DNA of 63,304 nt, counting the filler, from Octopus bimaculoides (Eukaryota): the NCBI RefSeq assembly GCF_001194135.2. It is 5 parts of 5 records of this genome, joined end to end, with 100 filler letters (N's around TTAATTAATTAA, not from the genome) between each part and the next. Parts side by side here need not be neighbours in the genome. Positions count along the whole stretch, not along the records: positions 24,375 to 44,423 come from NC_068989.1; 4 more parts are not named here. One strand, given 5' to 3'. The stretch's first letter is position 1; each line of letters begins with the position of its first letter. Positions 24,594 to 44,423 of the stretch are shown piece after piece. Position numbers and translations under genes: made by a program. The notes below the pieces were generated by a model that searched no databases, was not told where the DNA came from, and saw only the letters and a list, made by a program, of their open reading frames with translations.

Positions 24594-24812
24594 CTTTGTG
24601 ACTGCTGCCTGTTATTCAACAAAGAGGACTTGCGAGAAATCAAAGCATTTTTCTCAGAGAATCTTTCCATGGATAACATAATCCGAATAATTAAATAATT
24701 CCAGAAGTTATCTGGAATATATGACATTTTGTACAAGTGACTCACTCTCTTCCCCTCACTATCCATGTATTTTCCAAGAGGTTCTGTTGGTAGCAATGAT
24801 GGAATCAGCAAC
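24594..24812 (-). CDS. ROCO exon: COR (LLIPSLLP..YKMSYIPDNFWNYLIIRIM..QQSQ), 219 nt
   Basis: Acceptor tattctgtag|, donor |gtatgt, phase 2-2, 73 codons. Confidence 0.92.
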
Positions 24813-27800
24813 CTACAGAATACAGTAACAGGGAACAGTGACTACAATGATTATACAAAAACAGAGTAAAATTGTCATCAATATTATCACCACCATCATC
24901 ATCATCTCCACCATCACCACCATTAGTCATTCATACATGAATATCTGATCACTGTTGGTTTTCACCAACTTAGAACACCTCCTCCATTTAGACCAGTGAC
25001 TCTCAACCATGGGGCATATGCCCCACCAGTGGAGCTTGGGAAAATTGTGGTGGGATGTGGGATCCATTTTTGTTTTTTTTTGTTTTTGTTTTTAAGTGGG
25101 ATATGGAATTATGAAAAGCTTTTTTTCCCCAGCAAATATACTACGGCTATACTCAGCCTAGCCAAACCAATCCCTCTAGCCAAGCATACTGTGGAAGACT
25201 TTGCTAAAATATAGTGCTATTCTAATGCCCTAGTGTGGATATTTCTTTAAGGAAAGTATATGATTATGAAATATTAAAAATAAAGTTGTTTGTTTTCCAA
25301 CCATCTGTGGTGCACACATTTTTCTGGAAAGTTATCGTGGGGCCTTGGGGAAAATATGTTGGGAAACACTGCTTTACATGGTGTATGTTCATAGCACACA
25401 TGATTCACTGGTATAAGGAGACTATGAAACACTGCAATATTTCAATCTTACAGTGTGTCTTCTCAGTCAAAGCTACCCTGCCAGAACAATGAGAATCAAA
25501 CAAGAATACATGTTCTTCTTTATAGAAATCAGCAACCAAAATTATTTGCTGATGCATACTGATTCCTGCTAAACAGATAATTATTTATGAAGTGCACACA
25601 GAATAGCAAGAATCTAAACAATAACATATCCTATTGTTATATTTCAGGATGGTCATTGTTTTTTTTTTTTTTGTGACACTAAAATAAGAACAATAACAAA
25701 GATGAAGTGAAGAATAAATATATGGTGCGTGTGTTTATTTGGCAGAAAAAAAAAAAAATGACCATCCCCAAATATAACAATATTTGTTCCAACACACAAT
25801 TTCATATCAGGAATCTTGCAAAACAAATACATAAACATAATAACATATCCATTCATTCTCAGTGGTGGATTCAAACAGAAATACTAATTGCTACCAAGGA
25901 CACAGTGTTTTGTTTTGCAACTATAGCATACTACTTTTGTGTTAGCAGTGTGATGTCCTTATTCTTAAGTTTATCTCTACAGATTTTTTATATAATTTGG
26001 AATCAGTTGTAAAAGTTACAATGTTTTGTATATGGATATGTTTCTTATTTCTTTATTGCCCACAAGGGGCTAAACATAGAGGGGACAAACAAAGACAGAC
26101 AAAGGGATTAAGTCAATTACATCAACCCCAGTGCGTAACTGGTACTAAATTTATCGACTCCGAAAGGATGAAAGGCAAAGTCGACCTCGGCGGAATTTGA
26201 ACTCAGAACGTAGCGGCAGACGAAATACCGCTAAGCATTTCACCCGGCGTGCTATCGTTTCTGCCAGATCACCACCTTATATGTTTTGTATATGGATATG
26301 TTTCTGTAAACAATGTGATTGAAGTTAGAAGAAACATTTATTCTACTTATTTTTCCTATCTTCAATTGCATTGTTTATATAAACGTATATGCCTATGAAA
26401 CGTCGTAACATTCAATGCTGACTCTGAATTCTATAGAAAATCTATAGAGATAAACTTGTAGAGATAAAATCAAACATGAATATCTGATCACTCTTGTTTT
26501 ATGTCATGGGAGAACATTTCCTCTCATCAGACAAAGTTATAGGGGATGGTTTTAAACTAAATATGAAGACTTTAAAACGTGAGGTTTCATATTGAAGTAT
26601 CAGAAATAGCTTTAAGTGGGTTGGCATCAAAAGGATGAAAAAGAAAAAAAGAGAAAACATTGGATACTGTAGTTCTAGATATACTAATGTTTGGAAACAA
26701 AAAAAATGTAAGATAATAATGAATGAAATGTCTTTGACTATAGAACTGTTCAAACAGTGCTGATCTGGTCCACAGCATCTATAACATACAACAACATTCC
26801 ATTAGGTACCCACTACCACCACCACAAATATATTTTTGATATTTCAATGGAACCTTTACGTGGTCATTCGACCTGCTAGAAATAGCAACCAACTCTCTCT
26901 CAAAGTGCACATTAATGTCTTACATAAGAAAAAACGGAACAAATGACATAATGGAGATATATATTCAAGATATCTAGATGCAGACATGGCTTATAAGTTC
27001 AAGCATAGCTGGGTAGTTAAGAAGTCCACTTTGTAACAATGTAGTTTCAGGTTCAGTCCTACTACACAGAACACAGGGAAAATGTCTTCAATTATAGACT
27101 TGGGTTAATCAAAGCCTTGTGAGTGTATATGGTAGACAGAAACTGCACAGAAGCCCATAAGCCATTTTTGATGATTGCTGGATTGGATCTCATTTTGTTG
27201 CATGAAACCATTTGGTAATTTGGTTATCATGAAGCTATGATAAAGAGACCAATACAATAAATACTAGGCTAAAAGTATAGGGGTCTGTTTGAGTAAACCT
27301 TTCAGGGTGGTGCCCCAGTATGACCACAGTAAAATGACTGAAACAAGTAAAAGAAAAATATTTAATGTTTTATCATTAAAATAATTCCTAGATTAATCTG
27401 TGTTACAATCAATTTAGAATAGTAAGATTACATAAGATATAACCATTCCCATCCTGAAAAGATGGAGTGGTCATGGCTAAAATGCCTTTGATTATAATTA
27501 TAGGGTGAAGGTGCATGGCTTAGTGGTTAGGGTGTTCAGCTTACAATCATAGAGTCATGAGTTCAATTACCGATGACGCATTGTGTCCTTCAGCAAGACA
27601 CTTTACTTCACCTTGCTCCAGTCCACTCAGCTGGCAAAAATGAGCAGTACCTGTATTTCAAAGGGCCAACCTTATCACACTTGTGCCATGCTCAATCTGC
27701 CTGAGAATTACTTGAAGGGTACACGTGTTAGTGGAGTGCTCAGCCACTTGAACATTAATTTCACAAGCAGGCTGTTCCTTTGATCAGATCAACTGGAACA

Positions 27801-30506
27801 CTCACCATCATAACCAACAGAGTGCCATATATATATAATTATAGGTCTGCTGAACTAGAGGCCAGAGCTAACCAATGCAACTCCACCCCACCCCAGTAAT
27901 AAGTAACTGAACTTACAAGTCTTTTTTCAGCTTCATTGCTATTTCAAATCTTTCCAAAAGTTTGATGTAACACCAACTTGTCTCTTTAAAGATTCTTTTG
28001 AAAACTCGATCTGCTTTCTTCAGGTGCAAAACACAACTGTTGTTGATAAAGCCATGAATTTCCTGCAAGAAAATACAAATGTTGGAGCTATAACAAAGAA
28101 TATCTCTGCCATCATGGACACAATTATAAAATCAAAAAATCAGTACAGTACCCACAACTTTTGGAAACATTTTCATGCTCAGAATCATTGGAGCATGGAA
28201 TAAACAAGCCATGTCAGTTGGTAGCTGTCAGGACATTACATCCTCAAAAATTTCTACATCATCATCACCATCATTGTTTAACATCCATTTTCCATGCTGG
28301 CATGGGTTGGCTGGTTTGACAGGAGCTGGCCAGCAGGAGAGCTGTTCAGGCCCCAATTGTCTGCTTTGGCATGGTTTCTAAGGTTGGATGCCCTTCCTAA
28401 TGCCAACCATTTTACAGAGTTTACTGGATGTGGTCTATATGCCACTGGCATGGGTGCATTTATGTTACACCAGCAAGAATGCTTTTTATGTGAAACCGGC
28501 ATGAGTACATTTTACATGGCACCAACCCTGCAAGACAAAGACCTCTCAGCTGGAGAGGGAGTGGAGGTATGGCCATAAAGGGTATGCCTGTATGTATGGA
28601 TGGCCACAGTTTTACTTAGTTTGGCATGTCTTCTCAAGTACAGCAAACTTCCACAAGTTCCAGTCCCTTGTCTTCTCCTCAGTGAGACCCAGCATCTGAA
28701 GATCTTCTCTCACCACTTCATTCCGCATCTTTCCTTCCACAAGTTTCCTCCACAACACATTTCCTAAAATTTCCCAACACTACCTCTGACATGCCTATTC
28801 ACCCTTTCCTCTTTATAGCTCTTTCAATGTTAACGTTTCTGTCTTTTTGTGGTTTATTCTTTGTTCTGTGTATGTAATTTTTAGTTATCATTGTTATCTT
28901 TCTTTATTTGACTAATCGCTGTTTTCTGTCCCCTCTTTTACCTTCCACTTTTTCAAATGAGTTGTAAGCACTGTATACAATTGACTCATTATCTTCATTT
29001 TATATAATGCAGTAAGCTCACAGAACTGATAGCATACTTGACAAAATGCTTAGTAACATTGTCTTTCTTTATGTTCTGAGTTCAAATTCCACCGTGGACA
29101 ACTTTGCTTTTTATCCTTTTGGGGGTCAATGAATGAAGGACCAGTCAAGTACTGGAGGGGACAAGTAATTCACTTGTCCCTTCCCACAAAAATTTCAGAC
29201 CTTGTGCCTAGAGTAGAGAGGATTATTATCCTTATTATATGTTCATGCATGTGAAGGTGTGTGGCTTAGTAGTTTGAGTATTCAGCTCAAGAGTTTAATT
29301 CCAGACGACATGTTGTGTCCTTGAGCAAGACACTTCATTTCATATTGCTCCAGTCCACTTAGCTGGCAAAAATGAATAGTATCTGTATTTTAAAGGACCA
29401 GCCCTGTCATATTCTGTGTCATGTTGAATCTCCTTGGGAACTTTGTTAAGGGTACATGTGTCTGTGTAGTGCTCAGCCACATGCGTGTTAATTTCACAAG
29501 CAGGCTGTTCCGACGATTGGATCAATTGGAACCCTCATTGTCTTCGTAAGTGACAGAGTGCCACATGTTCATGCAACAAAATATAGCTATTTTTAGTATG
29601 TATACCTTTGCATTTCCTGCAACTAGATAAAGCAATTTCCCTGCAACTAGATACAGCTATTGTTAATATGATACTGAATTTCTTGTGACAAAAGCTAACT
29701 CTTGTTAAAGTTCAAAAAAAAAAAAAAAANNNNNNNNNNNNNNNNNNNNNNNNNNNNNNNNNNNNNNNNNNNNNNNNNNNNNNNNNNNNNNNNNNNNNNN
29801 NNNNNNNNNNNNNNNNNNNNNNNNNNNNNNNNNNNNNNNNNNNNNNNNNNNNNNNNNNNNNNNNNNNNNNNNNNNNNNNNNNNNNNNNNNNNNNNNNNNN
29901 NNNNNNNNNNNNNNNNNNNNNNNNNNNNNNNNNNNNNNNNNNNNNNNNNNNNNNNNNNNNNNNNNNNNNNNNNNNNNNNNNNNNNNNNNNNNNNNNNNNN
30001 NNNNNNNNNNNNNNNNNNNNNNNNNNNNNNNNNNNNNNNNNNNNNNNNNNNNNNNNNNNNNNNNNNNNNNNNNNNNNNNNNNNNNNNNNNNNNNNNNNNN
30101 NNNNNNNNNNNNNNNNNNNNNNNNNNNNNNNNNNNNNNNNNNNNNNNNNNNNNNNNNNNNNNNNNNNNNNNNNNNNNNNNNNNNNNNNNNNNNNNNNNNN
30201 NNNNNNNNNNNNNNNNNNNNNNNNNNNNNNNNNNNNNNNNNNNNNNNNNNNNNNNNNNNNNNNNNNNNNNNNNNNNNNNNNNNNNNNNNNNNNNNNNNNN
30301 NNNNNNNNNNNNNNNNNNNNNNNNNNNNNNNNNNNNNNNNNNNNNNNNNNNNNNNNNNNNNNNNNNNNNNNCAAATCGACCCCAGGACTTATTCTTTGTA
30401 AGCCTGTACTTATTCTATCGGTCTCTTTTGCCGAACCACTAAGTTACGGGGATGTAAACATACCATCGGTTGTCAAGCGATGGTGGGGGGGACAAACACA
30501 AATACA

Positions 30507-30544
<38 letters not shown>

Positions 30545-32006
30545 TATGTACGACAGGCTTCTTTCAGTTTCTGTCTACCAAATCCACTCACAAGGCTTTG
30601 GTTGGCCCGAGGCTATAGTAGAAGACACTTGCCCAAAGTGCTACGCAGTGGGAATGAACCCGGAACCATGAGGTTGGTTAGCAAGCTACTTACCACACAG
30701 CCACTCCTGCACTTATGCAAAAAAAACAAAATTTAGGAAAATTCAAAATTGATATGAAATTAAAGATTTCTTTGTATTTAGATTATTTAATGCACATTCC
30801 TATTGTTTACTATTGTTTCCTATTGTTTACATCTAAACAATTGAAAATTGCACATATAAAATTATAGGGGCCCTACAACAACCTAATTGTTGATATAATA
30901 TATCAGGATTTCCTGATATAGAATATAGCTAAGTGTAAATGCACTTACTTTAAGAGCATCTGCAAGGTCATTTAATCTGCTATAAATAGCAACCAAATCT
31001 CCTTAAATGATATGCTATCACCTTAAAAAAAGAAGAATGATGCTTTGAATAGTGTAGCCTTAGATAAACTATACCTAAGCACAAATCCAGAATGGTCACA
31101 TCTGGAACACATTTGATCATGGTTCTACTCAATCAAGGCCAAGTTAGGACAAGGCAGTTATAACAACATCATTTGCTCCAGAAATATGAAAATATCCAAA
31201 CTTACAAGCCATAAATACCATTCTATCTCTGCTAGTGTGAAACAATGAAGGAACCTCAGTCAAGTGACTCAAGCTGCTAGAAATAACAGCAAAATTTCTC
31301 TCATTCTATATTCATCCTATATTCCATTGTCTTGAAAAGATGCAGACACATTGTACAATGCAGTCCTAGATATACAATTTCCAACAAGAGGGCAGAATGG
31401 CCCTGGCTGAAATATATGTGACCTTAAGTCTGCTCAGATAGGGGCTAAACACAATAACTTGTATAGAGAGAAACTGGTGTGAAGCAATAAAACAAAAAGA
31501 AAAAAAAAAACTAAATCATGAATGATTAATAAAAACTTCCTTACCTCATCTGTGAAGATCTTTCCAAGAGTATCACAAAGCCAAGAAGGGTTGAAGAAAT
31601 ACATAGCTGAGTCATTACTTATGTGATATACAATGACTCCAATTTCACTGAGAAAAAGGGACGCTAAAGATATAGGATAAAAAAAAAAAAAGAGTGAAAT
31701 AAATATTTTTTAATTACATAACATAATCAGCTATCTTTTATCTCTTTCAGTCATTAGACTGTGGCCATGCTGGGGTACTGCCTTGAAGAATTTCTAGTCG
31801 ATTGTATCAACTCTAGCACTTATTTTTTTAAAGCCTGGTACTTATTCTATTGGTCTCTTTTGCTGAACATCTAAGTTACAGGAATGTAAACATACCAACA
31901 CTAGTTGCCAAGCAGTGTTGGTGAGGGACAAATACAGACACAAANNNNNNNNNNNNNNNNNNNNNNNNNNNNNNNNNNTGTGTGTGTGTGTGTGTGTGTT
32001 TGTATG

Positions 32007-32042
<36 letters not shown>

Positions 32043-35000
32043 TTTCTTTCAATTTCCATCTACCAAATCCACTTACAAGGCTTTGGTCATCATGAGGCTA
32101 CAGATGCACTTGCACAAGGTATCACGCAATGGGACTGAACCCCGAACCATGTCGTTGGGAAGCAAGCTTCTTACCACACAGCTATGCCTGCACCAATATC
32201 TACGTATAATATTTAACACATAGACACCCTTGAGAGGTGTGATACTGTTGTTTATGTCTGAGAGAAAAATCTCCTCATAGATATGCTGCGCTAAAAATAC
32301 AATATATATTGGAGCAAAAAAAAGGATGGCAAACTGGCAGATCATTAGCAAGCCAGGCAAAATGCTTAACGCCATTTCGTCCATCATTGCATTTTGAGTT
32401 CAAATTCTGCTGAGGTCAACTTTGCCTTTCATTCTTTTGAGGTTCATAAAATAGGTACCAGTTGAGTACTGGAGTCAATGTAATTGACTTTGTACCCTCC
32501 CCCAAAATTGCTGGCATTGTGCCAAAATTTGACATCTATATAAAATAGAGCAAAATGAAAAATCGTCTCAGTAGTGGTTCACAAGAACACCAGTTGCATT
32601 TAGGCCTTTTAGTTCCTTGTCAATGATGTGTACTTGCTAGTTACATGCCTACAGCTCCCCTCCAATATCTATGAAAGAGTGAATAATACATTCACTTGAT
32701 ATTGCAAATAACCACCAGGTTGAATAATATTGTTTTGATTGTGTAGAGTGAGATAACACTTATAGAATATTTGGGATGGATATAGCCAGTTTAAATGCTA
32801 AAAGGTTGAATTAAAACAAAACAAAAAAAAAATGGAAATTTAAAATTTCAATTTAATTTGATTTAATAATGTAAAAATAATCATTCCAAATTAACCTTTA
32901 TGTAATTCCTCAGGGGTTTTGATATCATTTCCTTCAATACCTTCAATAATCTCCATCATCCTGTGTTCAAAGATATACAGTGCTGGCATGTAAATATGAA
33001 GATTTTGATGAATTCCTTGTATTTTCTTGGCTAATGATATGTAACTCTGGGGAACCTGAAAAAAAAAAAGAAAGAAAAAATACATATATAAATAAATACA
33101 TAAGGTGCAAGCATGGTTGTGTGGTTAAGAAACTTACTTCCAAAGCCATGTGGTCTTGGGTTCAGTCCCACTGTGGGGTATCTTGGGCAAGTTTTCTACT
33201 AAAGCTCTCTACGGATCAAAGCCTTATGAGTAGATTTGTGTGTGTGTGTGTGTGTGTGTGTGCATCACTACTGTTTGGCAGCCATTGTTGGTTTGTTAGA
33301 ATAAGTAGATAAAATAAGTAACAAACTGAAAAACAAAAAATAGTACTGGGTGGGATTTGTTCAATTATTCCCTTCAAAAAGGTGCTACAGTCCAATGAAT
33401 GAAACAAGTAAAAAATAAAATACAAGTAAAACAATATCATCATCATCGTCATAATCAACATTTAATGTCCGTTTTCCATGCTGACATGGGCTGGACATTT
33501 TGACAGGAACGGCAAGGCTAGGGGCCATAAAGCTTCCATTATCTGTTTTGGCATGGTTCCTACAGCTGGATGCCATTCCTAATGCCACCTATTTTACAGA
33601 GTGTACTGGGTGCTTTGTATGTGACACTATCACCTGTTCTTTTTATGTGACACCAGTACCGGTGCATTTTATGTGGTATCAGCACCCGTACCAATGTTTT
33701 CTATGTGGCACCTTGGTTTTAGGATCTCATTTCTGTTGTGGTAGGTGGGTCTTCTTGAGTACAACAATGTACCACATATCTTGGTCGTCTATCATCTCCT
33801 TCATAAGGCTCAGCATTTTGAGATCAGTCTTCAATACTTCATCCCATGTCTTCCTAGGATCCCTCTTCCACAACTACCCTTCACTTCCCAGCACTTCTTT
33901 ATGCAACTGTCCTCATCCATCCGCATCACATGACCAAACCAGTACAGTCTCCTCTCTTGCACACTGCATATAATTCCTCTTATGCCCAATTACTCTCTTA
34001 ATATACCAGTGCTCTGTTACACATGCACATTGACATTGCACATGCAGTGGAGCATACTAGCTTCATTCCTCTCCAGCTTTTACATGTCCTCTACATTTAG
34101 GACCCAAGTCTCACTATCATGCAGCATTACAGTTCATACACAATATCTACAAATATATAAGAGAGTAATGGTTGTTGTTGTTATTTAACCTGAGGTCAGG
34201 TTTGATAGAGAAGAATTGTATTCAAAGATATTCCAGTCACAAACAGCCAATCTTTTTATTTGTTATATGCATATGTATATATATATATATATATATATAT
34301 NNNNNNNNNNNNNNNNNNNNNNNNNNNNNNNNNNNNNNNNNNATAATACAGAATGGGACAAGAACGCAAAAACATCTAGACAGTTAGGTGATACAAGAAA
34401 GGGACAAAACACAGATGGATGATACAAAGAAAACACAGACATGTCATTCAGAGTTTTCTCTCTTCAGTCGAGTTCCAGATTATCTTTGCGATTTCAGCTG
34501 GTTATTCTCAATATTGCTCCAATCTGGCCAGCCCCAAGGAAAAACTAAGCTAAGGGCATTAGATTCCTTGGAAGAAAGCAGAGAATGTATACAAAAACAA
34601 GGACAAAAAAAACGAACAATGTTACACAAATACAGTAAGAATAATAACAGGAAATAACAACAGATGTCTTTCGACTAAGGACAAATAAAAATAAGCTGGC
34701 GTATATGGAAATAAGGCCTTACAGCCAGGACACAAGATTTCACAGGCACAGGGAGAAATAACGATGTTGCACAAACAATGGCTGCCCAAAAAAAGAAAGG
34801 TCAGGCTTGGCCAAACACCGGTCACGTGGGAAGAGAGAGAGGTAGAGGCAGAGAGACAAAAGAATTAGGGAGGGGTGAGAAAAAATGACAGGGACACAGT
34901 GAAGTGAAAAGTGGAGGAGGAAGAGAAGGCAAAAAAATGTGAGCGAGGGGGAACGAAAGAACGAACAGTGGAATGAACGAATAAGGGTGAAGGGGCTGAT

Positions 35001-35104: not shown

Positions 35105-37520
35105 CAGAATGGGACAAGTACGCAAAAACATCTAGACAATTAGGTGATACAAAAAAGGGACAAAACATACAGATGGATGATACAAAGAAAACACAGACAA
35201 TTGGAGCAATATTGGAAATAACCAGCCGAAATTACAAAGATAATCTGGATCTCAACAGAAGAGAGAAAACTCTGAATGACATGTCCGAGGCTATAGTAGA
35301 AGACACTTACCCAAGGTGCCATGCAGTGGGACTGAACCCAGAACCATGTGGTTGGTAAGCAAGCTACTTACCACACAGCCACTCCTGCGCCTATACATAT
35401 ATATTTCATTCCATAAATATTAATAATAATTATAAGCTTAAGAAAATAGTCTAATATTGGGGCATTTATATGCCTTGGTGAACATTTATAAGCTTTAAGC
35501 TTATAATTCTTATTATCATTCACAGAATTTTCACTCCTCATCATTTCTTCATTTAATGCAGAATATGTCATTATTTTTTTTATATATATACAATTTAATT
35601 TGGCTCCATGAAACTAGAAGTTTAGTTGGTTCCTGTTTCAAACCTAGAAATCTATATTTCACATAACCATCCCACCCCCAAATCAAATTGTTTTTTGACA
35701 GGCAATACATATTAAAAAGAGGATGGGAAAAGTGTCGGCTGTGGTAAGCTCTCAATAGTTGTGATCTAAACAGGTTTTGTAAGTATCTATCTACCAACCA
35801 AACAATGTCATATCAAGTCTATGAACTTCCTTTCTGTTGTCAACCTGTTTATATCACAAATATTAAGAACCCTGTACAATCAAGATCTCTTCTGACCTCC
35901 TGGCGTATAAAGTTTATTTGTTCCTGTCTATATGTTTAAGTATAAACATGTCACAACCTGACCTCACAACTGTTGTCTGTCTATTTGTACTTTTGTTCTG
36001 GCTTTCATACATACATACATACACACATGCATACATGTATACATACATAATACTGTGAAAATTTCAAAAACTTTTCAGAAGCATCTCATTTAAGTATATA
36101 TGCAAAAGTCTAGACATGCAACTATATGCATGAAAATACATACACAAAATATACAAATCTGCACATGCATTGACTTCAAATTACTGCACATATACACACT
36201 TACAAGTGAATTCCATCAGAAATCATAACAGAAATGTTATGACTTATACAGAAGGTGGGACATATAGCTTCCCATCTGGTGTATGCAGCAGAATACATGA
36301 AACACAACTTGATTTATGTTGGTTATACAACAAAACTATTAAACAAAAGATTCAATGGGCACAGATATGACATCTGGCACAATAACAGTAGTCCAACAGA
36401 ACTTGCTGAACATTTTGCATCAAATGACTGAAATTCTGAAAAAGACTTGTAAGTGCACATTCTCAGAAAATATCCTGAATCTGCTACACTTTCAGTACTC
36501 AAAATGCATGAGGACAAATATGTTTTCAGGTTATTAACATTACGCTCTGGAGGAATGAAAAAAATGACAGATTTCATCAGATTTACACAAAACTGTTTTA
36601 TCAAATAGTCTTCTTTTTTCTTCTCTTTTTTCTTTCTTTTTCTTTGTGCCAGTTGTATAATTGAAATTTGAAGATTGATGATGTCATTCCATCAACGAGG
36701 GGATGCTAGTTGCTCTCGTTCATATTGTGGATTTGAATTTCTAGAATTTTGAATTTTTATCATTTTCATTTTGAACTTGACAAAGACAGGCTTGCTGTCA
36801 AAATATCATTCAACCAATAGAATATCTATTGTAATTGCATCATTCTCCTTGCATATTCTGTTTACTTTTGTGAAGAGTTATGTCAATCCTTTCAAAATAT
36901 TGAGTGAGAGAGCATGTATACCAACAGCAATGCTACATGGCAATGAGATGTAGGCCCTGAATGCAGAAGACATACAAAGGCTAGAGGGGAATGAAGCTAG
37001 AATGCTCCACTGAATGTGCAATGTCAGTTTACATGTGTGACAGAGTGCTTAGTGTTTTGAGGGTAAAGTTGGGTATCAGAGGAATTAGACACAGTGTGCA
37101 AGAGATAAGACTGTGCTGGTCTGGTCAGGTGGTGCATATGGATGTAGACAGTTGCATACAAAAGTGCCAATCACTTAAAGTGGATGGAACTTGTGGACAA
37201 GGGAGACCCAGGAAGATGTGGGATGAAGTACTGAAGACTGATTTCAAGACACTGAGTCTTAGAAAGGGGGTGACTAAGAACTTAAATATCAGGCGCACTG
37301 CTGTATGCAAGAAGATCAGCGCACCACAACAGAATTGATACTGGTGCTGGTGCCATATAAAAAGCACTCATGCTGGTGCCATGTTAAAAGTACCCAGTAC
37401 ATTCTGCACCCAGCCATAGAAACCATGCCAAAACAGTCCATAGAGCCTGGTGCAGCCCCTGGCTTTACAATCCGGTCAAACCATCCAACCCGTGCCAGCA
37501 TGGAAAATGGACATTAAATG

Positions 37521-37584
<64 letters not shown>

Positions 37585-40500
37585 CATTCTCTTTATAATA
37601 CAGCAGGGTATAATTTAAAGGAGGTTTGGTTGTTATCTTTAGCAGGTTGAATCACCAGAGAGAGGCTTCTTCATTGGCTCATGCTGATGGCAGTTATTGT
37701 GGCAGGGTGCTCATTGGGCCTTGAGGAGCATCAGTTGACCATTGTCATCATATATGTGTCTAGAACAGATTGGTTTGGTAGAGTCCATTGCTCCTCTCCA
37801 ATTCTACACAGATGTTCCATCCTGAGTGGACTGATCTGTTGAAATTTAAGTGTCTTTGCTATAGACAAAACATAGCAAAGATGACAGAATATTGAAGCTT
37901 GGCTGACAGTCCAACACTGTACAGGGTGTCCCAGAATTAACTATTTCAATGAAGTCAGGCAAATAAAAAAAAAAACTGACAGAGTTTTATGCTTAATACT
38001 TAGTCAGGATACTAAAACAAATACATCTATAAACCTTACATCAAAACTTTATTTTTCTGTATCTGTTCTATCTGTATTCCTGCAAATTTCAAATCCATCC
38101 TTAGCATTGTGAAACACATTTTGAAGCACTTCAAGAGATATCTCCTGCACTGCTAACAGAATGTATTCTTTATGTTCAGCTAAACTATTTCTCCATCCTG
38201 TGGATGGAGGTAGAGAAAAAGACCGCAGCCAAATTGATAAAAAGCTGTCATAGACAGATAAGCGGGATCCAACAAGAATGAAAATAAAACAATAAAATTA
38301 TTATGAAAATTATAAAATTAAAAGCAAAATTAGAAATTTATACACTTTTAGCACATATTAACATGATTAAAATAAATAAAAGTGAGTTTTAAAAAAGATT
38401 AATCTGATTTCACTGAAATATATAGTTATTTACCCAACCAACCATTATTCAAATCTCACAAAGCAAGCACAAGAAGTAGCAAGAATTTTCAAGAAAGTGT
38501 ACCTTTCTATCCAGTAATTTAGTTCTGTTATTTTTAGCATCTTTCATTTCACTGGCAATATTATAAATCTCTGCTATCAGTTCCTTGATTCCAGTTTGAG
38601 TTTTTGAAGATATTCCCATAAATTTAACTATATGTAATGAGTATGTTGAGTTCTTTAAGTATTTGTCTATCTTGGACTCAACTGATTTCAAATAACTGCA
38701 TTTCTTATCCTGGACTTGATCCAAAAAAGTACCCACGATGATCACATAAGAACGTGGTGCTTTAGCCTGCAAAAAAATAAAATATCAAAATAACAAACAT
38801 AAAAAGAATTATTCAAAAACCCTTATGACAGAACCTAATTATAACAGTTTCAAATTTTGACACAAGGCCAACTATTTCGGGCAGGAGATAAGTTGATTAC
38901 ATCAACCCCAGTGTTCAACTGGTACTTATTTAATCAATCCCAAAGAGAGAGGCAAATGTAGAGCAAAATCCATTAAAAACCTATTTTTTATTAACATGTA
39001 GCATCACACTGTTTATATACCCTTCATACAGTCTGTTTTCAAAAGGATTTAATGAAATAAGACATACCTCAATACTTTGCAGCCACTGTTTAAGATTTTC
39101 AACTTTCTTCCTCAAGTCCCACACTAACAGGTACAGACTGTTTGGTGTGATAAAACTGTGGTGGATGGGACGGAATGTTTTTGCTTGTGAAAATTCCCAC
39201 ACATTAAATGTTATTGATGCTATTTCATCCTAGATGCAATACAAAAAGTAAAAGGAAGAAAAGAATGTGAATGTAAAATATTTATCCTACAACAAAACCA
39301 AATTTATAAACATTTTTTTTATGTGAGGAATTTTATTTTAGAACCATAAATTTAGTCAAGTCTATATTATTTGAAGGGAAGAAGAATAGATGGGCAGATG
39401 TATAGGTGGGATATATGTATGGCGGAATGAACATTAGTTCTTAGAGACATACAATCCTTTACAGTATATATTGGAATGTTCAAGGGCAGCCAAAAGAGCT
39501 GGTACATACACCATAAGTCTATATTTTGAGAGACAGACAATAGGAACAGCACAGCATTGTCAGGTCACATATGGTACCTGAAAGATTACAATACTGACAA
39601 CTTTAATATTACCTGGTCTAAACTGTACTTCAATAACAAATACACCTCTTATCCAAATTAATGTAGCCTTTGCAATGAGGAAAAGTACCTCATCTTCACT
39701 GAAAGAATAAATACCATAAACAGAAGATTTGAACTAACTTCTACATACAGCCATGAGAATAAGTTCTATCTTTTCAAATTCAATAGAATTAGTGGGCCAA
39801 AATAAATGTAAACATCCGAACAATCAAAAGTCTGCAGAACAGCATCCCACAAAATAAAGCAGAAATCAATAAAACACTAAACAATGCAGGAACAAACAAA
39901 TAAACAACAGCAAAGAGGAATGTAAGATGCTATCATGTTTGTAGTAGTGGGTGTTTTTAGCAAGTAAGATGGTAATGTACAAGAGAAAAAGTGAGAGACA
40001 AAATCAAATCTTGGAACACAATAGACTTGATAAAATGTAGGTCGGAGACCGCTTCATCTGCACATGCTGTGATGATGTGATGTGAAGGGAGCAACCAATC
40101 AAAAGGTATGTTATGTGCAACAACAATATTTTCACCAAATTTTTTGAGATTGAGATGAGAGCACAATGGTGCGTAACAAAAGAAAACAGATCATTAGATC
40201 TGACTTTATAAAAGTTGTATTGGTGATCATTAAGGAGGGAAAAGAGTTGGAATTGTTAAAAAGGTTATTGCTAATGGCTTCCTCTCTTTCTATCTTACTC
40301 CCTCTTTCTCTCTCACTCTCCCTATCACCTTTGAGTGAGAGAAGATCATAGTTAGCAGGGTCAGAGAGAGGGGATACTCTTCTTTTGAACTGAACACAGC
40401 ATAGTGTGTTTTAAAGGATCAAGATACTTCAGAGAGAGAGAGAGTATGCTAAGGATAGAGTTTAGTTCAAGGATGTATTGTTTGAGGGTAATAGAAGAGA

Positions 40501-41381
40501 CATTGTCATGGTCAGTAGCCATATGTGGTTGAAGCTTTCACACTTGACTGAATGTGTGCATGGTAGTGGGTTTGGTTTAGTTTTGAAGGAGATTAACAAG
40601 TATGTGCATTGTGGAGTTGAATGTAGAGCAAGCAGGAAATGTTGGAGTACTGATTCACTACTGGAGTAGCGTTATTCTCTGTGTGAGAGTATTGTGTGTA
40701 GAACCATTATGTTTGAGAAAGCAAAGGTACTTCAATTAAAAAGACCTCAACAATAACTTAACATGATTATTTAAAATATTAAAGAAAGATTTCAATGATA
40801 GTGTTAGATACACTTTCATATTTCATGTTCCTATTTATTTTTTGCTTTTTGTTTTTGCATTCAGCAATTGATCAGTAATAACTGTAATCTTTAACATTCA
40901 AATTACTGTCAAATGTAATGCTTATTTACTCACAATATTTTGATCTCATAATTTCAAATTTCAGTGATGTGATTATTTACTTTTTGAATGACACTGTAAG
41001 GTAGGAGTGAGAGGCTGAATCTTGTCAGTTTAAGCAAAAAACAGGAAGAAAATTTGAGCTACCTATGGTCAGTTTAAATGCTAAAAGATTAGATACAATA
41101 TTTTCCTGAAAAACTTCTGAGTCAGAAAATAACTCATAAAGCTTCTAAGTTTGCAAAATAGATTCACTTATCAACTTCAACTTCTTTCCTTTGTTGAAGA
41201 AACAGAATTAAAATGACTTAAAAAAAACAAAAAAAAAAAACACAAAGTAACTTACAAAAGAGAAGAGGCTTTTAGCTGAACGTTCTAAAACCCATTTGTA
41301 TGTATTCAATCCAAGACTGTTTTGAAAATGTTCACCACTTTTCTTCATCAGACATTCCAACAAAGCAGTTTTACCTTCTCC
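24594..41381 (-). CDS. LRRK-like: LRRK1/2-like ROCO protein, partial gene (Roc-COR, 7 exons, 1196 nt), incomplete at both ends
   Basis: Exons 41381-41256, 39229-39068, 38766-38503, 33055-32896, 31663-31545, 28062-27917 and 24812-24594 are all GT-AG. Intron phases 0,0,0,1,0,2 join without stops. The motifs GEGKT, SLYLLVWDL, VIIVGTFLD, VPQSY, FLSEIGV..YFFNPSWLC, LLERFEIA, LLIPSLLP and YKMSYIPDNFWNYLIIR are colinear with LRRK Roc-COR. Exact orthology is unresolved. Confidence 0.9.
24994..25371. mobile_element. hAT (Charlie-like) MITE
   Basis: Ends CAGTGACTCTCAAC and GTTGGGAAACACTG are imperfect TIRs. The 8-bp flanks ATTTAGAC and CTTTACAT resemble a decayed hAT TSD. Confidence 0.65.
26046..26280 (-). 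mobile_element. SINE family 2 (Nin-like), young full-length copy with a 25-bp TSD
   Basis: ATGTTTTGTATATGGATATGTTTCT is present exactly at 26021-26045 and 26281-26305. CpGs are retained. Confidence 0.93.
26978..27355 (+). mobile_element. SINE family 1, old CpG-decayed copy
   Basis: CAAAGCCTTGTGAGTG..AGACAGAAACTGCACAGAAGCCCA and tail GGTGCCCCAGTATGACCACAGT..ACTGAAACAAGTAAAAGA. Confidence 0.75.
27503..27828 (+). mobile_element. SINE family 3, full length (tRNA head and Meta-like GTGTCCTT..AGCAAGACAC..CCAGTCCACTCAGCTG core)
   Basis: GTGAAGGTGCATGGCTTAGTGGTTAGGG..GAGTTCAATT..AACAGAGTGCC. A second copy lies at 29250-29565. Confidence 0.85.
27917..28062 (-). CDS. ROCO exon: COR (EIHGFINNS..YIKLLERFEIAMKLKKD), 146 nt
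   Basis: Acceptor tattttcttgcag|, donor |gtaagt, phase 0-2. Confidence 0.9.
28250..28790 (-). mobile_element. RTE-clade LINE 3' end
   Basis: The same 3' UTR block (CCATTTTCCATGCTGGCATGGGTTGG..) as 33440 and 37500. The minus strand encodes decayed RKxWxEVVRxDLQMLGL. Confidence 0.75.
29035..29225 (+). mobile_element. SINE family 2, decayed
   Basis: GTTCTGAGTTCAAATTCCACCGTGGACAACTTTGCTTTTTATCCTTT. Confidence 0.75.
29250..29565 (+). mobile_element. SINE family 3
   Basis: Colinear with 27503-27828. Confidence 0.85.
30372..30715 (-). mobile_element. SINE family 1
   Basis: Reverse complement of the family 1 body; ends TTACCACACAGCCACTCCTGCAC. Confidence 0.88.
31545..31663 (-). CDS. ROCO exon: COR (ASLFLSEIGVIVY..YFFNPSWLCDTLGKIFTDE), 119 nt
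   Basis: Acceptor tatctttag|, donor |gtaagg, phase 1-0. Matches the LRRK2 HFLNESGVLL..YFVEPKWLC block. Confidence 0.92.
31738..32195 (-). mobile_element. SINE family 1 (contains a small gap)
   Basis: TTTCAGTCATTAGACTGTGGCCATGCTGGGG..CTTCTTACCACACAGCTATGCCTGCACC. Confidence 0.85.
32345..32530 (+). mobile_element. SINE family 2, decayed
   Basis: CTGGCAGATCATTAGC..GAGTTCAAATTCTGCTGAGGTCAACTTTGCCTTTCATTC. Confidence 0.8.
32896..33055 (-). CDS. ROCO exon: start of COR (VPQSYISL..TPEELHK), 160 nt
   Basis: Acceptor tttttttttcag|, donor |gttaat, phase 0-1. Confidence 0.88.
33103..33420 (+). mobile_element. SINE family 1, CpG-decayed
   Basis: GGTGCAAGCATGGTTGTGTGGTTAAGAA..ATCTTGGGCAAG..AAAGCCTTATGAG-(TG)n..GAAACAAGTAAAA. 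Confidence 0.8.
33440..34150 (-). mobile_element. RTE-clade LINE 3' end (RT C-terminal region, 3' UTR, GAT/ATC tail)
   Basis: The minus strand matches the + copy at 36905-37520 (ETW.LNVEDM.KLERNEASML..RLYWFGHVMRMDEDS). Confidence 0.85.
34343..35285. repeat. (TA)n-flanked interspersed repeat with internal direct and inverted duplication; family unassigned, possibly Penelope pLTR-derived
   Basis: 34344-34440 is repeated at 35100-35198, and 35199-35285 is the reverse complement of 34438-34524. Confidence 0.75.
35283..35392 (-). mobile_element. SINE family 1, 5' part
   Basis: CCGAGGCTATAGTAGAAGACACTTACCCAAGGTGCC..TTACCACACAGCCACTCCTGCGCC. Confidence 0.88.
36257..36575 (+). mobile_element. Penelope-like element GIY-YIG endonuclease fragment
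   Basis: HLVYAAEYMKHNLIYVGYTTKLLNKRFNGHRYDI..ELAEHF..HEDKYVFRLLTLRSGGM shows the GIY-YIG pattern (VY..IYVG, R..H, late E), with 2 stops. Confidence 0.85.
36771..36813 (+). ncRNA. Decayed minimal type I hammerhead ribozyme in the Penelope pLTR (probably inactive)
   Basis: TTGAAC-TTGACAA-A-GACAG(GCTTG)CTGTC-AAAA-TA-TC-ATTCAA. Stems I and II and the palindromic ATAT stem III are in place. Four substitutions from the CTGANGA/GAAA consensus, three of them G>A at CpG. Confidence 0.7.
36905..37580 (+). mobile_element. RTE-clade LINE 3' end with (ATT)n tail
   Basis: ACIPTAMLHGNEM*ALNAEDIQRLE..IRGIRHSVQEIRLCWSGQVVHMDVDSCIQKC..GRPRKMWDEVLKTD, then the 3' UTR and about 19 ATT units. Confidence 0.88.
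37922..38200 (-). mobile_element. Tc1/mariner-superfamily 3' end (TIR and transposase C-terminus)
   Basis: TA|CAGGGTGTCCCAG terminus; the minus strand reads SLAEHKEYILLAVQEISLEVLQNVFHNAKDGFEICRNTD. Confidence 0.6.
38503..38766 (-). CDS. ROCO exon: Roc G4/G5 (AKAPRSYVIIVGTFLD..ISSKT..KLLDRK), 264 nt
   Basis: Acceptor ttatttttttgcag|, donor |gtacac, phase 0-0, 88 codons. Confidence 0.92.
39068..39229 (-). CDS. ROCO exon: Roc switch II region (DEIASITFNVWEFSQ..WLQSIE), 162 nt
   Basis: Acceptor tttttgtattgcatctag|, donor |gtatgt, phase 0-0, 54 codons. Confidence 0.92.
40160..40720 (-). mobile_element. CR1/L2-group LINE RT fragment (same family as 52950-57100)
   Basis: The minus strand reads SDPANY.. 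and LNDHQYNFYKVRSNDLFSFVTH, matching NPTNYRPIAL and FNDDQYRFCKASSTGDLFFYIT at 55.8-56.0 kb. Confidence 0.68.
40888..41092 (-). repeat. Short interspersed MITE-like repeat (second copy 57925-58090, + strand)
   Basis: TGTCAAATGTAATGCTTATTTA..GATGTGATTATTT..GTAAGGTAGGAGTGAGAGG..TTTAAATGCTAAAAG is the reverse complement of the 57.9-58.1 kb block. Confidence 0.7.
41256..41381 (-). CDS. ROCO exon: Roc P-loop and switch I (GEGKTALLECLMKK..KSLFSF), 126 nt
   Basis: Acceptor tttgtttgttatag|, donor |gtaagt, phase 0-0, 42 codons open. Confidence 0.88.
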
Positions 41382-41487
41382 CTATAACAAACAAAGAAAT
41401 TATATACAACAATAAATTAAGTAAAATGCAATACAACAACACAAGTGTTAAATAGGGAAAATAAAAGTAGCTTTTTTTAACTTTTAT

Positions 41488-41700
41488 CTTTTACTTGTTC
41501 CAGTCGTTAGACTATGGCAATGCTGGGGTACAGCTCTGAAGAATTTTAGTTGAGCTTATCAACCTCAGTATTTATTATTTGTTTGTAAAGCCTGGTATTT
41601 ATTCTATCAGTCTCTTTTGCCAGACCGCTAAGTTATGGGGATGTAAACACACCCCCACTGGTTGTCTAATCGTAGTAGAGGACACACATACACACACATA
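41488..41700 (-). mobile_element. SINE family 1, 3' half
   Basis: CTTTTACTTGTTCCAGTCGTTAGACTATGG..CGCTAAGTTATGGGGATGTAAACACACC. Confidence 0.75.
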
Positions 41701-41957
41701 TATATATTGCTAATTTAGTGCTAGGTTACAAAAACTATCTACAACCTCAAGAAAGCCTCCTGGGCATTTGAGAGAGTCTAAGTCCTGTGTGTTCTTAGTG
41801 CTTATTGTTCCTGCACACCTGCCATGTACAAAGACAACTCTATCTGTTAATCTACCTGTGATTCCACTGCACCTCTTATGTATCCATAGCTAACACTAGG
41901 TGCAGCTAATGGAATTTCTTCCAATTCCTTTCCTGTATACTGAGCAGAGAAAGAGAG

Positions 41958-42402
41958 TGTAGGAAGTGAGGTTGGCGTTGGATGGGTGCCTCACAATTCC
42001 TTACATAAACATGGAAGGAAAATAGTGGAACAAGAATATCAAAAGAAATAAAAATATTTATTTTTCGTCTGTACAAGCGTTACATCTTGGGACAATCAGT
42101 AGCCAGGTTGCCTTGGTGTGGAAGCAGCAGAGTTGGTTTAATCACAAATGTGAAGGCATTCTTCACAGTTTAGCCAATGTCGTGTGGAGGTCTTCAGAAT
42201 TCCAGCTACATGGAGCTGGTCGAGATGCGTGTGTCTCAGTCAGAAGCAGGAGCATATAGGATGATATGGCGGTCAGGCCTAGCGGCTACTGATGACTGCT
42301 CATGCACGTAAGAGGCTTCCGGCAGGCCTTCCGGAAGCTCTAATCCCTGCGCATACATGGATGAAAATCCCAAAATGGCAACTGGAACTAGGCATCACTA
42401 CA
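41958..42402. mobile_element. Solo LTR, 445 bp, probably Gypsy-type
   Basis: TGTAG..CTACA termini, 4-bp TSD AGAG at 41954-41957 and 42403-42406, internal AATAAA on both strands near 42045-42065. Confidence 0.7.
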
Positions 42403-43034
42403 AGAGTCTTAGTTGCTTTCTTGCTAACAACTTTAGTCTTTGCTATTTCAAAGTTTTTCCCCAATTCTGAAATTGAAGAGTAAGTTTTCCTTCTTGAGAT
42501 GTTTTTTAAGAATACCCACTGTCAATTTCACTGCTCTGGAAGCTGAAAGACAAAGTTTGATGTCACCAAGATTTGAACTCAGAACAAATTTCTATAACTA
42601 AATTACTGCAGAGCAAATTGTCCATCTTTCTTATGTTTGCCACTCCAAATTTAGTGATGAATGCAATGATAAATGGAAGAATGAATAGAATGAAACAAAG
42701 GAATGGGTAATGGAGCAGGGTGGATGAGGTCAACAAAGAGGGAGGAAGTAAAGAATGGGAAAGGAAAAATAGAGAGCCAAACCCTTTAAGCAAGGCCAAA
42801 ATGGTGGTAAAGGGCAGAGGAAGGGGAACAGGAAGAAAAGAGAGGGAGCAGGAATTTAGAAGCAAAACTGCACCTAGAATATAGAACAGGAAAAATCTTA
42901 TAGTAAAAAATGGAGGAAAATTGTTTAGGAGCACGCATATATAGATAACCACAATGGTATTCATACACATATACAATAATAAAGATACATATGCAAACAA
43001 ATATCTGTGAAATTATATACATTTTATACACATA

Positions 43035-43440
43035 AGCACAGGCATGGCTGTGTGGTAAGAAGATTGCTTCCCAGCCATGTGGCTCTGAGTTTAGTCTCAC
43101 TGCATGGCACCTTGGACAAGTGTCTTCTACTAGAGTTTCAGGCCCACCAAAACCTTGTGAGTGGATTTGGTAGACAGAAACTGAAAGGAGCCCATCATAT
43201 ATAGAAATATATACATGTGTGTGTCTCCTTCTCTCTCGGTTTGTTCCTCACCACCACTTGACAACCAATGTTGGTATGTTTACATCCCTATTGCTTAACA
43301 GTTCAGCAAAAGAGACCAATAGAATAAGTACCAGGCTTAAAAAAATAAAGAAATCCCGAGATTAATTCATTTGACTAAAAATTCAAGGCAGTGCTGCAGC
43401 ATGACTACAGTCTAATGACAGAAACAAGTAAATGAAATAA
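43035..43440 (+). mobile_element. SINE family 1, CpG-decayed
   Basis: GCACAGGCATGGCTGTGTGGTAAGAAG..CACCTTGGACAAGTG..GAAACAAGTAAA. Confidence 0.85.
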
Positions 43441-43565
43441 AAGAGATAACTCCTTAAATATAAGGAGAATAGTGTAGGTGCCAAGACATGTTCTTGTTTC
43501 AGTCCACATGTGATTGGAAATTCTTCTGACAGCATTTTTGGTGGAATACACGTCCATATATATTG

Positions 43566-43725
43566 TTATTCATTGCTTGAACCTAGAGAGATAAAGTGAC
43601 CAGGACATCCAAAACGATGAAGAACTTTCCACATAGAAGCTCTTGGAACACTATCAAAGGATTTTTTGAAGTCATGCAAAACAAGGAATATGTGTTTTTG
43701 TTGTTCCCTGCTTTTCTCTTGGAGA
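43566..43725 (-). mobile_element. RTE-clade RT fragment
   Basis: LQEKSREQQKHIFLVLHDFKKSFDSVPRASMWKVLHRFGCPGHF. Confidence 0.8.
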
Positions 43726-43729
43726 AAAG

Positions 43730-43860
43730 GAAGAATCAAATGCAGAAAAGAAAAACTTGACAAAATCAACCTCATCCTCTACCAACATTACCATGCAGTC
43801 AGTGCCATCAAATCTTCTATGCAAGAATTGGTCTACAGAGTCATCAATGCCATCACCATA
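43730..43860 (+). mobile_element. RTE-clade C-terminal zinc-finger-like fragment
   Basis: LPCSQCHQIFYARIGLQSHQC, similar to the CxxC..RIGLxSH RTE C-terminus. Confidence 0.6.
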
Positions 43861-44085
43861 AAGGAAGCATTCAGCAAAGAAGAAACTAAATTCTTGGATA
43901 TGTGATAAAGCTGCTGCCACAGATGAATTGACTCTTAAATGTCAGATTCTCCTACTCCCAATGGCATACTAATTTACCCAACCTCATAATTTCAGTGTGT
44001 AATGTTTACCAACACAAACCAAACACCATTTTCTTCAGACTTTGTTTTTTAGTTAAAACATGAACTAATACTTATAACAAACCTC

Positions 44086-44423
44086 TAAACCTCTGTACCT
44101 GGCTTTCGTTGACATGGAGAAAGCCTTTGACAGGGTCCCCCGATCCCTTATCTGGTGGTCAATGAGGAAACTTGGGATAGAAGAATGGTTAGTGAGAGCT
44201 GTGCGAGCCATGTACAGAGATGCTGCCAGTAAGGTGAGTACAGCAATGAATTCCGGGTAGAGGTAGGGGTCCACCAAGGTTCCGTCCTCAGCCCCCTCTT
44301 ATTTATCATAGTCCTCCAGGCAATCACAGAGGAGTTCAAGACAGGTTGCCCCTGGGAGCTCCTCTCTGCTGATGACCTTGCCCTAATTGCGGAGTCACTA
44401 TCAGAACTAGAGGAGAAGTTTCA
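44086..44423 (+). mobile_element. RTE-clade RT core fragment, young, cut by the linker
   Basis: KPLYLAFVDMEKAFDRVPRSLIWWSMRKLG..GVHQGSVLSPLLF..ELLSADDLALIAES. Confidence 0.92.

Follow-up and report, generated by a model that had tools for sequence, protein, structure and literature searches.

The octopod ortholog of LRRK1 has a Roc domain in which both conserved residues of the DxxG (G3) motif are replaced, while the gene itself is intact and under strong purifying selection. Part of this gene is carried by a 63,304-nucleotide stretch of Octopus bimaculoides DNA (the window; NCBI RefSeq assembly GCF_001194135.2, five parts joined with filler letters), of which the piece at positions 24375-44423 (NC_068989.1) was analysed. 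As judged from its sequence, the minus strand of this piece carries the Roc domain and most of the COR domain, in seven consecutive exons that all have AG/GT borders and compatible phases and that join into an uninterrupted frame of 398 residues (Table 1), set in DNA rich in introns and repeats. The second Roc exon, read on the reverse complement, translates as DEIASITFNVWEFSQAKTFRPIHHSFITPNSLYLLVWDLRKKVENLKQWLQSIE and contains WEFSQ at the place of the canonical W-D-x-x-G. The gene family is already known and the Argonauta protein described below is already annotated as LRRK1-like; what appears to be new is an LRRK1 ortholog whose Roc domain is without both DxxG residues and has been conserved in this form under selection. 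We found no paper in the literature linking LRRK1 or Roc domains to pseudoGTPases or discussing cephalopod LRRK1, and the papers naming both LRRK1 and octopus do not concern its Roc domain.

The assignment to LRRK1 follows from domain matches, a close Argonauta counterpart, bit scores and a tree. Pfam finds Roc (PF08477) at 54.9 bits (cut-off 27) and, immediately after it and in frame, COR-A (PF16095) at 38.1 bits (cut-off 35.3), and the best solved structure for the fragment by sequence in phmmer was human LRRK1. An exhaustive protein search returned an "LRRK1-like" protein of Argonauta hians (GAB1603577.1, here P0002; 1889 residues), which is 79% identical to the fragment over Roc and 78% over all 398 Roc-COR residues, and which matches human LRRK1 at 615 bits and LRRK2 at 304 bits. 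In its genomic locus (L005) the seven corresponding exons are equal in length to those of the piece (126, 162, 264, 160, 119, 146 and 219 bases). A more distant, cephalopod-type relative (P0003; 1879 residues, 40-43% identical to the fragment) is encoded by a single open reading frame in an RNA sequencing assembly (contig L006). Both proteins have the ANK-LRR-Roc-COR-kinase-WD40 architecture, of which the piece covers Roc and COR. A neighbour-joining tree was built from 48 long ROCO kinases over the Roc-COR-kinase region, with 100 bootstraps. In it the Argonauta protein and P0003 form a pair (100/100) that groups with the LRRK1 proteins of Haliotis, Potamilus and Pecten (100/100) inside an LRRK1 clade (93/100) that also has members from vertebrates, echinoderms, amphioxus, hemichordates, annelids, brachiopods and nemerteans. 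A published LRRK phylogeny, which assigns LRRK1, LRRK2 and LRRK3 members to spiralians, is consistent with this placement (PMC10643122). Word-index protein searches returned one genomic open reading frame with the Roc fragment and nothing with a three-sequence alignment; they missed the known Argonauta protein and are thus uninformative on absence.

The register of the motif is set by phmmer alignments, in which "fnvwefsqaktf" matches column for column FNVWDIGGPASM of human LRRK1 and LNVWDFAGREEF of LRRK2, and in which the longer span "fnvwefsqaktfrpihhsf" runs gap-free against FNVWDIGGPASMATVNQCF of LRRK1 and LNVWDFAGREEFYSTHPHF of LRRK2. This places Glu at the Asp position and Gln at the Gly position of DxxG, the G3 motif being WEFSQ here as against WDIGG in human LRRK1 and WDFAG in LRRK2. 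An earlier note on this DNA had proposed such a non-canonical G3 in a ROCO gene, with both DxxG residues exchanged, and the codons at 39199-39185 together with the alignment confirm it; the gene is, more precisely, the LRRK1 ortholog. The ExxQ of octopods lacks the Asp and Gly that characterize G3 in Roco proteins and switch GTPases. Canonical DxxG is conserved in the family but does not formally define it, and the gene is best filed, on present sequence comparison, as a ROCO member with an aberrant G3.

The other G motifs are a mixture of changed and retained elements. In switch I the Ser of NSLG stands opposite the Thr of "ATVG" in LRRK2 and of "ATNG" in annelid and brachiopod LRRK1, and the same position is Asn in P0003; the Ser at the Thr position was likewise noticed earlier, and it is given less weight here because switch I varies among Roco proteins in general (PMC6337361). 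The G4 motif TFLD aligns with THLD of LRRK1 and LRRK2 and retains the Asp of guanine specificity. As had also been claimed, GKT, the G4 sequence VGTFLD and a G5-like ISSKT are kept in a clean frame; the octopod sequences retain all three of GKT, the G4 Asp and G5, of which P0003 has the first two, its G5 having diverged. The P-loop reads GEGKT in the piece and GNEGEGKT in Argonauta, the exon with the first Gly lying outside the piece. An AlphaFold model built from a 19-sequence alignment (predicted local distance difference test, pLDDT, 80; predicted template modelling score 0.79) has the strand and helix order of a G domain and predicts the G fold confidently, with residues 48-55 as strand 3 and residues 58-68 as helix 2, the switch II helix, the place where DxxG always lies. 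Its best fold match was LRRK1 (8e05, template modelling score 0.75), followed by LRRK2 and the prokaryotic Roco Roc-COR structures MbRoco2 and CtRoco. A first prediction from three sequences (pLDDT 42) was dropped.

Cephalopods edit their mRNA heavily. The piece has assembly gaps within introns, and the earlier note had named an assembly error, a decaying private copy or adenosine-to-inosine (A-to-I) editing as explanations that could undo its claim; beyond the gaps and the editing habit we found nothing in favour of such an artefact, and it now seems scarcely credible. The WEFSQ exon occurs with the same codons in four independent read assemblies of one closely related species (L001-L004), the motif is present in the Argonauta genome, and the RNA-derived contig of the distant relative reads GAG ... 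AAA, that is, WEFSK, so that an assembly or sequencing error fails as an explanation and the ortholog check across cephalopods, which had been suggested, comes out in favour of the motif. The Glu codon is GAA in the piece and L001 and GAG in Argonauta and P0003, and the Gln codon is CAA in the piece and L001 and CAG in Argonauta, with AAA (Lys) in P0003; a synonymous codon change with the amino acid kept is a signature of selection on that amino acid. The orthologous exon of L001 is 96% identical and its flanking introns 82%: exon 39229-39068 differs at 6 of 162 positions (3.7%) and the flanking introns at 236 of 1341 (17.6%; Fisher p = 3.7e-7). Against Argonauta, the 398 codons align gap-free with a nonsynonymous rate (dN) of 0.12 and a synonymous rate (dS) of about 1.0, which gives a ratio (omega, dN/dS) of 0.12 overall, 0.165 in Roc and 0.08 in COR. 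With its seven open exons and intact splice sites the gene is intact and under strong purifying selection, and a dying copy is thereby argued against. Editing could not restore the canonical motif either: with A read as G, GAA/GAG can give only GGA, GAG or GGG (Gly or Glu) and CAA/CAG only CGA, CAG or CGG (Arg or Gln), so that the first site cannot become Asp, nor the second Gly. An alternative G3 exon was also sought, and the canonical G3 peptides of about 150 relatives aligned nowhere in the piece except at 39229-39065.

How unusual the motif is was assessed in 166 Roc-matching proteins, namely the 150 best hits of the exhaustive search and the members of their clusters. Both the Asp and the Gly of G3 are present in 144 of them, one is missing in 15 and both are missing in seven, the last group consisting of four cephalopod sequences, two short fragments and one chance tandem-repeat match. 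The latter (P0050, from ENA, 511 aa) was rejected as a motif relative, as its seven matches, via IWEFSREKTFRE, come from a translated tandem repeat with a unit of ~85 residues. Non-canonical G3 motifs thus make up about 13% of the surveyed ROCO proteins and are not very rare as such, within a region that a review describes as the most conserved part of Roco proteins, switch I being variable in length and composition (PMC6337361). The deviations cluster in LRRK1: Haliotis (P0007) has WELPG, Pecten (P0028) WDMAC, a sturgeon copy (Huso, P0160) WVIGG and the crinoid Antedon (P0093) FDLKC, whereas G3 is canonical in the bivalve Potamilus (P0021; WDLAG) and in every sampled annelid, brachiopod, nemertean, hemichordate and amphioxus LRRK1. 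Among the sampled molluscan LRRK1 proteins only those of cephalopods lose both G3 residues, Haliotis and Pecten losing one, and the switch I Thr is found in none of them; the LRRK2-like protein of Pecten retains the canonical motifs, and so does a protein of the gastropod Bulinus, which in the tree falls outside the LRRK1 clade. Roc identity between molluscs is 0.36-0.42 as against 0.51-0.59 for the kinase domain, while in annelid-brachiopod and annelid-amphioxus comparisons the two domains are about equally conserved. These patterns suggest that the Roc switch of molluscan LRRK1 has been relaxed step by step, most of all in cephalopods. The Haliotis, Pecten and Potamilus proteins, in one clade with the cephalopod gene, share with it the missing switch I Thr and a G4 of the TFLD/TFYD type, and differ from it in keeping at least one G3 residue and the DYG of the kinase.

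A G fold without the conserved catalytic or switch motifs is what places a domain among the pseudoGTPases, which have been divided into classes i to iii (PMC5593906); the octopod Roc has a predicted G fold with non-canonical G2 and G3. Of the possible behaviours, we regard it as the probable one, by a modest measure, that the octopod Roc domain binds guanine nucleotide and does not switch normally, in the manner of an Rnd- or RGK-like pseudoGTPase. The retained GKT and G4 Asp point to a nucleotide-binding, non-canonical switch rather than to a dead domain. In Ras-like G domains the G3 Asp holds Mg2+ via a water molecule, and the backbone NH of the G3 Gly together with the switch I Thr binds the gamma-phosphate and so closes both switches. 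The octopod Roc domain would still fold, and nucleotide binding is probably retained because GKT, the G4 Asp and G5 are kept in octopods; what would be lost are the contacts of the switch I Thr and of the flexible switch II Gly, the pair by which the switches close on the gamma-phosphate. Unlike canonical Roc, the domain might then no longer alternate between one shape with GTP and another with GDP, and could be a structural partner, loaded with nucleotide, for COR and the kinase, with kinase control resting on other inputs. Its state could resemble that of the H-Ras mutants T35S and G60A, which bind a GTP analogue and stay mostly in the open, effector-incompetent state 1 (PMC4867591), and whose mutated sites are the structural positions of Ser22 and Gln57 in the octopod fragment. 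They are, however, laboratory point mutants of another GTPase, whereas the cephalopod Ser and Gln or Lys were fixed by evolution together with other switch II changes.

Two natural families offer further likenesses. Rnd proteins keep the Gly of DxxG and differ from canonical GTPases at catalytic positions, and the G3 of RGK proteins (Gem, Rad, Rem) is non-canonical, without the usual Gly-Gln. The behaviour of class ii, the Rnd family, is the one that we judge most likely for the octopod Roc: its members have an intact P-loop and a degraded sequence near switch II, and they bind GTP permanently and do not hydrolyse it, while RGK proteins, of class iii, have diverged motifs and retain nucleotide binding and measurable hydrolysis (PMC5593906). 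Rnd proteins are free-standing members of the Rho family that have no homology to the octopod Roc beyond the G fold, and RGK proteins, whose G3 is non-canonical as in octopods, are small stand-alone GTPases without a COR or kinase partner.

Several points weigh against a nucleotide-bound Roc that does not switch. The exchange of Asp for Glu may be harmless on its own, as the LRRK1 of Haliotis keeps ExxG (WELPG), and G3E-family GTPases work with Glu at this position. The argument thus turns mostly on the missing Gly and switch I Thr, and the G3 Gly touches the gamma-phosphate through its backbone NH, a group that every residue has. Switch I, as said, varies among Roco proteins generally, and RGK proteins without a canonical G3 still hydrolyse GTP (PMC5593906). 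The P-loop's first Gly, in an exon that the piece does not include, is taken from Argonauta, and the AlphaFold model is ligand-free. The designation of candidate pseudo-GTPase in the earlier note is upheld as to the motifs, both G3 residues being replaced while GKT and the G4 Asp are kept, and remains a candidate designation as to function.

A rival reading is a Roc domain that is still a working GTPase and switch with a non-canonical G3, an RGK-like pseudoGTPase of class iii in which Glu would take over the Mg2+/water role of Asp, and in which the Gly position would accept Gln or Lys or even use it as a displaced catalytic residue. G1, G4 and G5 are kept and Roc is under strong purifying selection; an intact LRRK1 gene can bear one such change, as WELPG of Haliotis and WDMAC of Pecten show; GTP hydrolysis persists in RGK proteins although their G motifs have diverged (PMC5593906); and LRRK1 is in general without an equivalent of Ras Gln61, the position being Pro in vertebrate LRRK1 as well as in Argonauta and P0003. 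On the other hand, the Gln is not conserved at its site, being Lys in P0003, H-Ras G60A and T35S lose the closed state (PMC4867591), and Roc is less conserved than the kinase within molluscs, in contrast to the annelid, brachiopod and amphioxus comparisons. We consider this working GTPase a rather unlikely, though by no means negligible, outcome. Less likely still, and in our view improbable, is a Roc domain that has become a scaffold without nucleotide binding, a class i pseudoGTPase like CENP-M or the pG domains of p190RhoGAP. The absence of both G3 residues and of the switch I Thr would fit such a scaffold, as would the relaxed constraint on Roc relative to the kinase domain in molluscs, whereas the octopod sequences and P0003 still have GxxxxGKT and the G4 Asp, the retained P-loop argues against class i, and class i examples are typically without any G motifs (PMC12490416).

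Human LRRK1, a ROCO kinase (structures 8e04, 8e05, 8fac), is among the closest known proteins, sharing the domain order of the cephalopod orthologs and being the best match of the octopod fragment by both sequence and fold. The likeness extends to IEAKAP with the K746 position, to G4 (THLD in human, TFLD in octopods) and to G5 (SCKT and SSKT), and the differences lie in G3, in the switch I Thr, which is Ser in octopods, and in the kinase DYG, which is DYN in the cephalopod orthologs. Both GTP binding and GTP hydrolysis have been reported for human LRRK1 (PMC7886321).

The DYN, in the kinase activation segment of Argonauta (L005) and P0003 (L006), was seen in the orthologs, the kinase exons being outside the piece; all other sampled LRRK1 proteins in this comparison (Haliotis, Potamilus, Pecten, Owenia, Lingula and Polyodon) have DYG. 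The Gly concerned is at the position of LRRK2 G2019 and LRRK1 G1411. Human LRRK1 G1411S is as active as the wild type (PMC7886321) and the catalytic Lys, Asp and Asn are present in the kinase of the cephalopod orthologs, so that cephalopod LRRK1 is probably an active kinase. Two "invariant" glycines, of G3 and of DYG, changed in the same lineage are worth noting. More tentatively, and as a possibility that we would not yet back, cephalopod LRRK1 might be a natural "switch-dead" LRRK, in which DxxG was replaced by ExxQ/K, the switch I Thr by Ser or Asn and the DYG Gly by Asn in the cephalopod stem, with purifying selection acting thereafter. If so, kinase control would be uncoupled from the GTPase cycle, and cephalopods would provide a natural system for asking whether LRRK kinase function needs Roc cycling.

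How the Roc GTPase controls the kinase is a central open question for LRRK2, in Parkinson's disease, and for LRRK1, in bone disease, and point mutants made in the laboratory have supplied most of the evidence on this control. In the present case both residues of the best-conserved Roco motif were changed by evolution, and the gene remains intact and under constraint in octopods as well as in at least one remote relative of cephalopod type. If Roc binds nucleotide without switching, an LRRK could function without the canonical Roc cycle; if GTP hydrolysis persists, the known sequence tolerance of G3 would be widened. Either way the present result offers a sequence-level lead on mechanism, and the gene is a natural test case for what the Roc cycle does.

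Features located in the piece are collected in Table 1, the four COR exons having been located with the Argonauta ortholog as guide. Roc exon 1 is 79% identical to Argonauta residues 645-683, and the last exon inside the piece is 82% identical to residues 971-1043. The Lys of AKAP in Roc exon 3 is at the position of human LRRK1 K746 and LRRK2 R1441.

Table 1. Exons, motifs and intronic repeats in the analysed piece (coordinates of the window)
Feature	Position	Strand	Remarks
Roc exon 1 within the piece	41256..41381	-	second half of P-loop, helix 1, switch I; AG acceptor, GT donor
GEGKT (P-loop, second half)	41381-41367	-	
NSLG (switch I)	41321-41310	-	
Roc exon 2	39068..39229	-	strand 3, G3/switch II, helix 2, strand 4, into helix 3
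WEFSQ (TGG GAA TTT TCA CAA), at the place of W-D-x-x-G	39185..39199	-	
Roc exon 3	38503..38766	-	AKAP, strand 5, G4, G5, last helix
TFLD (G4; context VGTFLDQ)	38730-38719	-	
ISSKT (G5)	38613-38599	-	
COR exon, VPQSYISLAKK ... EELHK, ends in intron phase 1	32896..33055	-	tblastn with Argonauta residues 828-881; splice sites checked
COR-A exon, SLFLSEIGVIVYHISNDSAMYFFNPSWLCDTLGKIFTDE	31545..31663	-	contributes to the Pfam COR-A match (38.1 bits, cut-off 35.3)
COR-A exon, EIHGF ... LLERFEIAMKLKKD	27917..28062	-	Argonauta guide, splice borders
COR exon, LLIPSLLPTEP ... YIPDNFWNYLIIRIM ...	24594..24812	-	last exon of the gene inside the piece
Examples of repeat pairs within introns	36915-37338 with 34142-33727; 43031-43348 with 30717-30389; 29251-29566 with 27505-27830		

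The exon upstream of the P-loop exon, with strand 1 and the first P-loop Gly, was sought in 41382-44423, where scores only reached the level of shuffled queries, and it is placed past the end of the piece. An open stretch of 82 codons at 38052-38297 (-), shortly after Roc exon 3, is preceded by a good polypyrimidine tract and AG. It was considered as the next exon and rejected, since its frame misfits the donor at 38503, which is of phase 0, and runs into a stop, the true next exon being 33055-32896; it has no counterpart in Argonauta and is probably intronic, less probably an alternative terminal exon.

The introns themselves hold three assembly gaps, at 29730-30371, 31945-31978 and 34301-34342 (642, 34 and 42 N), none of which touches an exon. 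A scan of the piece against Rfam gave no match. Throughout 24375-44423 the introns are full of interspersed repeats, 70-95% alike and in both orientations, several copies of which hold open stretches such as "...GRGRPRKMWDEVLKTD..." that resemble a retroelement tail. There is also a perfect (ATT)20 microsatellite at 37521-37582, and two short arrays with a repeat unit of 26 bases, at 28447-28514 and 33609-33686, are nested in related repeat copies. In the intron upstream of the P-loop exon, a reverse transcriptase-like fragment (FLVLHDFKKSFDSVPRASMWKVL...) at 43778-43569 (-) matches Pfam RVT_1 below its cut-off (E = 3.6e-4, 20.7 bits), and it may account for this intron being much longer than that of Argonauta, which has ~700 bases.

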